A DNA stretch of 64,000 nt from Klebsormidium nitens (taxonomy: Eukaryota > Plantae > Klebsormidiophyceae): positions 287,291 through 351,290 of the forward strand of contig DF236976.1 of assembly GCA_000708835.1 (NCBI GenBank), written 5' to 3'. The notes beneath the pieces were generated by a model. That model had not been told where the DNA came from and made no database searches. It was given only the letters and a program-made list of their open reading frames with translations. Positions 38,085 through 44,143 of this stretch are shown here, piece after piece (within the stretch, counting starts at the first letter, position 1; every line of letters begins with the position of its first letter). The position numbers were made by a program, and so were the translations under genes.

Positions 38085-41000
38085 ATGCCGCAGGGTTCAA
38101 TCTCCTCCTCTAAGGATGCTGTTGGGGTTGCCGTTGTGAACTACAAGGTAAGTTTCTACTTCTTAGCTGCTCATACTAATCTGACCAAATGGTACGAAGG
38201 TGACAAGGGCGCATTGTTCTGGTCTGAGCTGAGTTGAGGAAGCTGGCGCATCTATTCGGTCTCCAACCTGGTTTGAACAACCTGCTTGAACGTGTCTCTA
38301 CAGAGCAAACTCGTGCAGGCAATAAGAGTTGCACCAGTTGACATAGATTATGTCCTTGAGAACAAGCAGACTAGTCAGGAGAAGCCTGTATAATGCAGCT
38401 GTGGACCGTAGTTGGATCACCAATCTGCTTTCTGCTGGCTTTGCGCATATTATATGAAGAATTTGGCTCTTTTTATATTTCCAGAGCACTTGTAGATACG
38501 AAGTTTCTGAAACATGGCTGGTGTGCTATCATTGCCTGATTGTCTAGACCTCATGGGGCTTACTTGGAACAAAACGAAAAGAAGGAAAACCCATTCACAC
38601 CCGCTCCTGGCAGGCTAGCTCAACGGAGAGTCTGTCCACAAGGATGTCAGCTGAAGCCGTGCAATTCCTCCCCGCTATCAGTGAGGGAGTGTGATCTCTC
38701 TAGAAATGCAAAGCAGCATTGGTTCTGAGTAACTGCCCCTGATAAATGCCGTCTCAAAGAGACATGCACCGCCCTTGGAGTTTGATCCGGTTTCTGTGTC
38801 AGCATTCGTTGACCATTCAGTCACAAGGTCAAACCTCACCCTTAAGGCGTAACGACTCTGTTGCACAGCATTTGACATTCAGCAGGTTTCTATCACTTGA
38901 CCCTCTTGTAGTTAACCAGGCTCAGACCAGGACTGTTCGTGAGTCGACGGCAGTCAGCCACTTGCAAACAGAGAGTGATTGAAGCTTGTTTTTATGGTGA
39001 CAGGTACCGATCTGCGAGAGTCATGAGGACGTGCTGAAGAACTGTGAGAAGATTGTGGCTAAGATCAAGGGCGCAAAAGCCGGATACCCGGGCCTAGACC
39101 TGATCATTTTTCCGGAGTACAGGTAATGAGCACATTTTCGACCTGCACTTGCGGACAACCCTCAGCGTGTTTCAATGACATTTTTAAGGACTGGGGTTGT
39201 ATAGATGTTGCCACTGGACTGGGGTTAGTTGTTGGATGGAGCCCTTTTGACGCCCCTCCCACCTCTAATATCAGGGGACAGCGCCTTTTTACAACAAGCA
39301 ATATTTTGTGAGCGCACAGATGATTGCATGCCTATTTGTCCTTTGTTACAACGACTCCAATGAAAGCAGTACACAGGTCGTGCTTGTTTTGTCTAGTGGG
39401 CTCATGTGTGTTGTTAAACGGGCACTGACAGTAGGGTACTGATTTTGAAGAAGCTTGTTTGTGCAGCACTCAAGGGTTCCACCCCACCAAGTGGAACGAA
39501 TTTACCACCACGCTCGATGGCCCTGAGATGCAGATCTTCAAGCAGGCCTGCAAGTGAGTAGAAACCCAACTCTCGCTCACACTGGTCTTTACTGAGCAGA
39601 TGACTGAAAAGCTCAAAAGCTGTTAGAAGGAACCTTCTTCCGACGTCCTGACTGACAACATGCAATCGGATAGGACTTGTTCTCAAAATGCAAGAGAGCA
39701 GAAAGGAGAAAGTGCATGTGTCTGGAAGAAACTGCTTCCGGGGAGATGGGCCCTGAGAGTGAATCGGAAGTTGCATTTGCCCTAATGAATATGGATTTGA
39801 GCTGTTACAGGACCAGCTTTTACGGGAGAACGCTGCAAGGTATTCCAAACAATATGGCACTTGGAATCGATGTCTTACTTCTCCTCTTTGTCCAGGGAGT
39901 ATGAGGTTTGGGGCATATTCTCACTGACCGGCGAGAAGCATGAGACAGAGGGTGTGAATCCCTACAACACGCTCGTGCTCATCAATGACCAAGGGGAGCT
40001 TGCGCTCAAGTAAGGAGCCACTCATAACACTTCCCTTCACAAGAGTGATGTTCAGAAAGAAGGCTCGATAGTGCTTTTGAAGCCCGTCGAACGAAGTCAA
40101 CAGGTTGCCAATCTTGGGAGTCAGTCTTACGCTTTCGGACGGCCGGTTTCATTATAACCCGCACAAAGCCAAAGTGCTATCTGGCGGATTGCACGAGGTC
40201 ATTCTTATGTATGCAAAGCTTCGAGGGATACCTGGTCTCACAGGGAGGTTTGCGGTCAATTGATGTGGAGGGAAGCTCTCTTAAAACGGGACCAATGGCT
40301 TCAAACAAAGAAGCGGCACTGTTGATTCGCACTTGCATTCTGTGGTCGTTCTTAGCAAAGGCGCCCTCTTTGGGTGTGGCAATCCTAGTGAATGCTGTGA
40401 ATGACTCAGACATGAGGCAAACAGGCAGATTTCCCTGTTCGCAACCATTTCAGTCGACCAATTTCCCGATCCCAACGCCCTTACCGTACCAGGCTCGTCG
40501 TCATCCACCTTGAGCAGGGCCTTTAACCACGCCCAGGACACGGTCTTGACCATATTATATGGCAAGAAGCCTTCGGTGCTATAAGGAGCCCTGACTTGTC
40601 CTCGTTGAACCTCTTAAGATCACTTGCATCCCTTGATTTGAGATCCGATGAAGCCCTCAAGTGTCACAGGTGCTACCTGCTTCGGGCCTTGCAGGTCTTT
40701 GCTTCGGTGCCAGGACCTTCTGAGACAAGCCTCCGTAACCCTTCCCCAATCAGACCCCTAACCAGCTTCTTAACCCGCTCTTTGGCCGTTTTCAGATACC
40801 GCAAAATATTCCCGTGGGTGCCCAAGGAGCCCTGGACTGCCGGCCACGAGACCGCCGTCGCAGAGGGACCGAAGGGCCTGGTTATTGGCGCCACCATCTG
40901 CTATGACTGCAACATTCCGGAGATCTGCCGGGATACCGTTATGAAGGGCGCGGAGCTGCTCGTCAGGATCCAGGTTAGGGTTGACTGTCATTTGACAACC

Positions 41001-44000: not shown

Positions 44001-44143
44001 CGACTGCCCCGGGCAAGGCGAACGGAACCCACGCGAACGGAATCCAAGAGAATGGAATCCAGGCACCGGCTGATGTGTCCAAGAAGGTCGCGGCGAACGG
44101 GCATGCAAATGGCGTGGCGAATGGAGTCGCCAATGGGATTTGA
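38085..44143 (+). CDS. amiE: Aliphatic amidase (nitrilase superfamily, bacterial AmiE/AmiF-like), 387 aa. Exons: 38085-38147, 39004-39122, 39467-39553, 39896-40009, 40796-40973, 41861-42025, 42516-42583, 43231-43348, 43892-44143
   Basis: [21 protein letters not shown] (AmiE as recalled: [21 protein letters not shown]). Catalytic triad Glu (LIIFPEYS), Lys (YRKIFPW), Cys (ICYDCNIPE). Also [62 protein letters not shown]. All 8 introns are GT-AG and phases close. Confidence 0.92.
41060..41240 (+). repeat. Degenerate intronic copies of the 3' half of amidase exon 5
   Basis: 41061-41149 copies 40889-40973 including the donor CAG|GTTAG. A second shorter fragment lies at 41209-41239 (gcgcccccatctgacatgactgcaacatccc). 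Confidence 0.85.

Follow-up and report, generated by a model that had tools for sequence, protein, structure and literature searches.

The green alga Klebsormidium nitens harbors an expressed and spliced nuclear gene encoding a predicted AmiE-type amidase. The gene lies on the forward strand at positions 38085-44143 of the DNA analysed here, a stretch of 64,000 nucleotides of contig DF236976.1 (positions 287,291 to 351,290 of the forward strand; assembly GCA_000708835.1) that is called the window below. The reading that we favor, with a probability of about 0.75, is that the gene encodes a cytosolic member of the AmiE family, within a subfamily carrying ICYD, FHP and EPW motifs, and that it most likely derives from one bacterial transfer that preceded the split between Chlorophyta and Streptophyta and was followed by vertical descent. 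The enzyme represents no novel type of system, and its gene model can already be found in GenBank, annotated as GAQ79293.1.

The 387-residue protein is encoded by nine exons, as read from the sequence. Summed, these exons give 1164 nt, that is 387 codons and a stop codon, the TGA at 44141-44143. All eight introns (342-887 nt) have GT..AG borders. Logan contigs matching positions 38100-44099 contain all eight exon joints in spliced form, in four runs from four studies and with no differing letters. The kind of run was labelled by a guess, though contigs from which all eight introns are missing must derive from RNA. The transcript contigs are about 1.85 kb long, which leaves an untranslated region of roughly 0.3 kb on each side. 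Letter for letter, the predicted product is GenBank GAQ79293.1, “Carbon-nitrogen hydrolase [Klebsormidium nitens]” (UniProt A0A1Y1HMR0, 387 aa; P0294): the nine exon peptides follow one another in this protein without a mismatch, interrupted only by four split codons, and threading it onto the window returns identical exon coordinates. The stored GenBank protein was used for the full-length analyses, and profile searches of the model were also made exon by exon. Thus, the full-length, in-frame gene of nine exons with a Glu-Lys-Cys triad, proposed by a first-pass annotation of the window, is borne out by the RNA joints, by the identity with GAQ79293.1, by threading and by the conserved residues described below.

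Profiles and structures place the product, a probable AmiE-type amidase with the alpha-beta-beta-alpha fold, in branch 2 of the nitrilase superfamily. The whole protein reaches 453.6 bits on the AmiE equivalog profile of NCBIfam (NF009802, cut-off 427). Canonical AmiE reaches 699 bits on the same profile, so that the K. nitens protein is a peripheral member of the family. Exon by exon, the NF009802 matches are colinear over profile positions 1-313, and this profile outscored that of AmiF (NF009803) in every exon where it scored; the short exon 3 matched the AmiF profile only. Exons 5 and 6 are above the threshold of the Pfam CN_hydrolase family (PF00795). The best matches among solved structures are AmiE of Geobacillus pallidus (2plq) and of Pseudomonas aeruginosa (2uxy), with an E-value of 1e-109 over residues 2-318, and AmiF comes next at 1e-70. 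An AlphaFold model built with a 17-sequence alignment has a confident core at residues 6-267, with high values of the predicted local distance difference test. Foldseek ranks 2uxy and 2plq first for this model (51% identity), followed by AmiF (35-40%) and, at about 20%, by plant CPA, Nit2 and others. Hence, the earlier view that the protein is of the AmiE type and not of the plant NIT/NLP type agrees with these rankings, and its claim of colinearity with AmiE from the first residues is supported by the alignment, which starts at residue 1.

Other memberships were rejected. An AmiF formamidase is ruled out by score, 303 bits on NF009803 for a cut-off of 406. The plant members of the nitrilase superfamily (NIT, NLP/CPA, beta-ureidopropionase) are set aside, Medicago CPA being about 20% identical and ranked under all AmiE and AmiF structures. 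The aguB profile gives 55 bits only for a cut-off of 410, as measured on a near-identical transcript product (P0166). Finally, the protein falls outside the canonical AmiE clade (Pseudomonas, Geobacillus, Helicobacter; ICDDGNYPE), from which it is separated by a 100/100 branch, by an identity of 45-51% and by its ICYD and EPW motifs.

Exon 1 (38085-38147) carries the ATG start and codons 1-21, matching AmiE profile positions 1-21. The 3′ end of exon 2 (39004-39122) encodes FPEY with the catalytic Glu59; the intron that follows is in phase 2, at a position common to the chlorophyte Myrmecia bisecta. Exon 3 (39467-39553) contains the TQG-FHP stretch with a two-residue deletion typical of the subfamily, and exon 4 (39896-40009) contains WGIFSLTGE and Thr101. 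Exon 5 (40796-40973) encodes Lys131 (YRK), the second glutamate Glu139 (KEPW) and the nucleophile Cys163 (ICYDCNIPE); the strings YRKIFPW..EPW and ICYDCNIPE quoted in the first-pass annotation are both located there. Exon 6 (41861-42025) encodes the GYMYP pocket residues and VYSYFGHS. Exon 7 (42516-42583) is identified by its AmiE profile match, its RNA joints and threading, and exon 8 (43231-43348) carries NHLYN..HRGY..FDFYKNW. Exon 9 (43892-44143) encodes the C-terminal tail, in which a 10-residue stretch common with bacterial sister proteins, a PPQSKL motif found in eukaryotes only and a low-complexity, ANG-rich end precede the TGA. Inside intron 5, the 3′ part of exon 5 recurs twice on the forward strand as incomplete, decayed copies, at 41079-41154 and 41200-41252. 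The first has kept the CAG|GTTAG donor and contains an in-frame TAG. Both are skipped by the RNA contigs.

In the 17-sequence alignment, Glu59, Lys131, Glu139 and Cys163 are invariant and align with E59, K134, E142 and C166 of 2plq and 2uxy. Variation is absent or almost absent at Y60, T101, W135, W141 and Y189, and a single sequence among those compared departs from M190. In AmiE numbering, these are Tyr60, Thr103, Trp138, Trp144, Tyr192 and Met193, which we take to line the small substrate pocket of AmiE; all six positions are conserved in K. nitens. Around the nucleophile, the protein has ICYDCNIPE where canonical AmiE has ICDDGNYPE, a difference from which a new specificity had been suggested. 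The feature is, however, not particular to the alga. An alphaproteobacterial sister from a metagenome-assembled genome (MAG) has ICYDCNMPE, and ICYD, in which Tyr follows the nucleophile, is present in all 17 aligned subfamily sequences, the position of the second Cys being occupied by G, C, M, A or S. The ICYDCN, EPW and FHP motifs are all common to bacterial sisters, and further features run through the whole subfamily: FHP with its two-residue deletion, a 17-residue stretch and TRDxDxP. The AmiF-like features mentioned in the annotation are real insofar as AmiF has the same EPW motif.

By analogy with the solved AmiE enzymes, Cys163, helped by Glu59, Lys131 and Glu139, would attack a short-chain aliphatic amide to form a thioester; ammonia would be the first product to leave, hydrolysis would then free the carboxylic acid, and amide nitrogen would thereby become usable ammonium. 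Short aliphatic amides are the probable substrates, as suggested by the pocket residues and by the operon context of bacterial relatives, and a role in the release of ammonia from small amides is likewise suggested by the conserved chemistry and the bacterial gene neighborhoods. The N-terminus, MPQGSISSS, lines up with that of the bacterial proteins and has no transit or signal extension; the lack of a transit peptide had been noted before and stands in the alignment. A cytosolic location is therefore probable. AmiE is a homohexamer held by its C-terminal tail, and the K. nitens protein may assemble in the same way.

The tail carries one further feature. An internal P-P-x-S-[KR]-L motif occurs in every eukaryotic orthologue examined, from algae and a chytrid (P0158, P0172, P0154, P0156, P0176, P0298), and does not occur in the bacterial sisters. 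In K. nitens it reads PPQSKL, at about residues 342-347 (window about 44003-44020). Its letters resemble a peroxisomal targeting signal of type 1 but stand 10-60 residues before the C-terminus.

The relatives of the protein were collected by two word-based homologue searches, each listing the 120 best matches. The K. nitens protein belongs to a 90% cluster represented by P0166, a transcript product 94.7% identical over 300 core residues, which is why GAQ79293.1 is not itself among the matches listed. Next closest among them are Spirogloea muscicola (85%), a transcript from ERR2041114 (80%), which from its accession we take to be of the 1KP type, and then Mesotaenium endlicherianum; Spirogloea and Mesotaenium represent the Zygnematophyceae. 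Chlorophyte orthologues, at 69-76% identity, are found in Chlorella vulgaris, C. variabilis, three Micractinium species, Parachlorella, Myrmecia bisecta, Stichococcus, Dunaliella and Tetradesmus. A protein of MAG Alphaproteobacteria is 72% identical. Measured in one alignment, identity to the K. nitens protein is 68-72% for the bacterial sisters and 68-69% for chlorophytes. The eukaryotic matches listed come from green algae and one chytrid only, and neither search has a land plant among its 120 best matches. A land-plant orthologue would be expected far above the weakest matches listed. A full-text literature search returned no paper on the algal clade, its transfer or its accession numbers. 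A review of formamidases treats the AmiE and AmiF of the nitrilase family as bacterial (PMC10781810).

Trees were built at two levels: a quick one with 143 rows and AmiF as the root, and careful ones with 62 and 53 rows, the last including loci from GTDB genomes. The quick tree did not resolve the relations among eukaryotes; its main structure agrees with that of the careful trees. Canonical AmiE forms a clade (100/100) separate from the large, mostly bacterial ICYD subfamily. Within this subfamily, a group supported at 100/97 has three parts, namely uncultured bacteria, the bacterial proteins P0181 and P0200, and all eukaryotes. The first part consists mostly of Alphaproteobacteria (Rhizobiaceae, Rhodospirillaceae), with one bin labelled Fibrobacteria. 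P0181 and P0200 join the eukaryotes at 98/87-89, and the eukaryotes form one clade that splits into streptophyte algae (100/99) and chlorophytes (92-96).

These trees, in which the algal clade is nested among bacteria, fit the bacterial origin put forward by the first-pass annotation; to this nesting within bacterial diversity are added the host genomic context of the gene and the restriction of the eukaryotic matches to green algae and one chytrid. In contrast, acquisition by a terrestrial alga is not sustained: the clade spans Chlorophyta and streptophyte algae and its branching follows the species tree, so that the gene is not an adaptation of a terrestrial alga. A broad, vertically inherited eukaryotic clade, the very pattern that the annotation had named as speaking against it, is seen in the tree among green algae, and the gene was not found in land plants by the two homologue searches. 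According to the favored scenario, a single transfer from a bacterium into the green lineage would have occurred before Chlorophyta and Streptophyta split. Introns would then have been gained and host codon usage adopted, and vertical descent would have been accompanied by patchy losses, including one on the land-plant stem. We infer both the number and the date of the transfers.

Introns were compared by threading six other genomic loci, from five green algae and the chytrid Rhizophlyctis rosea, all of which contain introns. Three intron positions are common across chlorophyte classes (Trebouxiophyceae and Chlorophyceae), and the gene is therefore old in chlorophytes. The intron pattern is compatible with one intron-poor ancestor.

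The gene is also well settled in its host. Flanking open reading frames (ORFs) are eukaryotic and correspond to an amino acid kinase with an N-terminal extension (plastid-type N-acetylglutamate kinase), an LSM gene and an AMP-binding enzyme. Codon usage is host-like, the GC content at third codon positions being 0.79 in the amidase gene and 0.74 in the neighboring N-acetylglutamate kinase gene. The amidase is under purifying selection: compared with the P0166 transcript, which comes from a closely related and probably congeneric alga, the ratio of nonsynonymous to synonymous substitution rates is 0.03 (dN 0.029, dS about 0.97; 300 codons). The kinase-like protein is encoded at 31234-32427 on the reverse strand by a single ORF of 397 residues, seemingly intronless over that stretch, and its N-terminal 130 residues or so look like an organelle transit peptide.

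The relatives in the sister groups are truly bacterial. P0169 lies on a 59-kb contig of densely packed genes, with UreE/UreF and a regulator combining helix-turn-helix (HTH) and cupin domains. P0200 is found downstream of an ATP-binding cassette (ABC) transporter of the urea/amide type and of an FmdA_AmdA amidase; the same transporter and FmdA_AmdA are carried by locus L008 and likewise by L006. Such neighborhoods fit a function in the scavenging of amide nitrogen. In the sister group, an AAA ATPase of about 415 residues also lies 3′ of the amidase gene (L001:9082-10626, L010:7034-8546, L008:7053-8330), and in L001 and L010 a small biotin/lipoyl-domain protein is encoded between the two, the arrangement being conserved.

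Several points weigh against a single ancient transfer, or against other parts of the favored reading. The eukaryotic clade has only moderate support (bootstrap 80-84; 48-62 in the Shimodaira-Hasegawa-like approximate likelihood ratio test). Forcing chlorophytes to group with P0181/P0200 costs only 4.2 log-likelihood units (p 0.145 in the approximately unbiased test), so that a tree breaking the eukaryotic clade is not rejected. Only one of the eight K. nitens intron positions (codon 61, phase 2) is common with a chlorophyte examined, Myrmecia. All three observations are in line with another history, in which streptophyte and chlorophyte algae would have acquired the gene on separate occasions from closely related bacteria, or one of the two algal groups would have received it from the other, the single clade being an artefact of sparse bacterial sampling; a chytrid copy nested in Chlorellales adds that movement between eukaryotes may occur in this family. 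We consider such a history unlikely, in view of best trees that give one eukaryotic clade whose first split is that of the species tree, and of a PPxS[KR]L tail motif common to streptophytes, chlorophytes and the chytrid and lacking in the bacterial sisters. Much less credible is the absence of any lateral transfer, in which case the gene would be an old eukaryotic one, inherited for example from the alphaproteobacterium that became the mitochondrion, and green algae alone would have retained it. Most named bacteria of the wider sister clade are indeed Alphaproteobacteria (Rhizobiaceae and Rhodospirillaceae MAGs), but the immediate sisters P0181/P0200 have no assigned taxonomy, the clade contains no non-green eukaryote except the one chytrid nested in Chlorellales, and an identity to bacterial sisters (68-72%) close to that to chlorophytes (68-69%) is hard to square with a split of mitochondrial age. 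As for bacterial contamination or mis-assembly, nothing but the bacterial affinity of the protein speaks for it, and we give it practically no weight: it is ruled out by eight GT..AG introns removed in the RNA of four studies, and runs against the eukaryotic flanking genes, the host-like codon usage and the presence of introns in the orthologues of six further eukaryotes, namely the chytrid and five green algae.

The remaining points against the favored reading concern the land plants and the protein itself. The absence from land plants rests on the two word-based searches, the cytosolic location is judged solely from the missing N-terminal extension, and the structural model is that of a monomer in which the tail, residues 268-387, is poorly modelled. 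The assignment of short amides as substrates rests on the pocket residues and the bacterial operon context, and no characterised member of the ICYD subfamily, nor any measured activity, was found. That the enzyme acts on something other than simple short amides, be it formamide alone, a compound related to urea or an omega-amide or similar metabolite, is conceivable but on balance doubtful. It would account for the changes D167Y, Y171I and W175C, for the two-residue deletion after TQG, for EPW as in AmiF and for an identity of only about 50% to characterised AmiE. CYD is the usual motif of Nit-type omega-amidases, which also counts on this side, and the bacterial members adjoin an FmdA-type formamidase/acetamidase with which they may not be redundant. 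The conservation of the pocket residues Y60, T101, W135, W141, Y189 and M190 argues the other way, as does a score above the AmiE equivalog cut-off and below that of AmiF. A more elaborate version of the favored history can be offered tentatively. Here the ICYD branch would have entered the green lineage once before the split, been kept under strong constraint as far as Zygnematophyceae, the algae most closely related to land plants, and been lost when land plants arose; PPxS[KR]L would reflect a new property specific to eukaryotes, for instance in targeting or assembly, and the enzyme might act on a substrate different from that of classical AmiE. Taken as a whole, this version is possible, if short of probable.

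Some relatives deserve separate mention. The copy of the chytrid Rhizophlyctis rosea (L005:6001-7352; P0006) is nested inside Chlorellales, has all three of its introns at Chlorellales intron positions and is also present as a fragment in a second R. rosea assembly. This points to a transfer from alga to fungus or to an algal contaminant common to both assemblies. In Parachlorella kessleri, a second CN_hydrolase gene, possibly a tandem duplicate, stands directly upstream of the orthologue (L089:1-230). Two metagenomic models, P0011 and P0044, are of the canonical ICDDGNYPE AmiE type yet look eukaryotic: one is fused to an N-terminal part resembling mevalonate-diphosphate decarboxylase, and the other continues into an AT-rich stretch that resembles an intron. 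The canonical AmiE type may have been gained separately by other eukaryotes.

With its introns, its expression, its purifying selection and a tree in step with host phylogeny, the K. nitens gene adds a well-documented case of a bacterial metabolic gene fixed early in green algae. It also corrects the link that had been made with life on land, marine and freshwater chlorophytes having the gene and land plants appearing to be without it. Finally, it points to an uncharacterised AmiE subfamily that is widespread in bacteria and algae and bears on the use of small amides as a nitrogen source by algae.

Comparison with known systems situates the protein. In diatoms, proteins annotated as “aliphatic amidase” are reported in proteomic papers to rise under nitrogen starvation (Phaeodactylum B7G8X8, Thalassiosira XP_002289996; PMC5070409, PMC6246746). 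They carry the same annotation and the nitrogen-scavenging role that is proposed for K. nitens, the likeness being one of annotation and role, and both are absent from the 120 best matches of either homologue search. AmiF (Helicobacter pylori 2DYU, Bacillus cereus 5G3O) shares the fold and, after the second Glu, the EPW motif, but its identity is 30-40% and it has ICHDGMFPE and GYTAP where the K. nitens protein has ICYDCNIPE and GYMYP. Closest are the green-algal orthologues, which include the “acylamide amidohydrolase” of Micractinium conductrix, CHLNCDRAFT_140067 of Chlorella variabilis, the “carbon-nitrogen hydrolase” of Dunaliella salina and SM000187S03864 of Spirogloea. They belong to the same clade, with 68-85% identity, the tail motif and intron-split genes, and differ from the K. 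nitens gene in most intron positions and in tail lengths.

The “aliphatic amidase” or “acylamide amidohydrolase” proteins of uncultured bacteria (MAG Alphaproteobacteria, Rhodospirillaceae, Rhizobiaceae and the metagenomic P0200) form sister groups with 63-72% identity and share ICYD[CG] with the 14-residue stretch that follows it, as well as TRDxDxP. In contrast to the algal gene, theirs are intronless and lie in operon-like settings near genes for ABC transporters, FmdA_AmdA, an HTH-cupin regulator and an AAA ATPase, and neither PPxS[KR]L nor the long tail is present in their products. The characterised reference enzymes, AmiE of P. aeruginosa (2UXY) and of Geobacillus pallidus RAPc8 (2PLQ), resemble the K. 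nitens protein in fold and length; they are colinear with it from residue 1, about 51% identical, and have the same Glu-Lys-Glu-Cys set and pocket residues. The algal protein differs from them in belonging to a separate subfamily (100/100), with ICYD instead of ICDD and EPW instead of EGW, in a two-residue deletion after TQG and a six-residue deletion before the last helix, in a tail that is longer and includes PPQSKL as well as an ANG-rich end, and in the eight introns of its gene.

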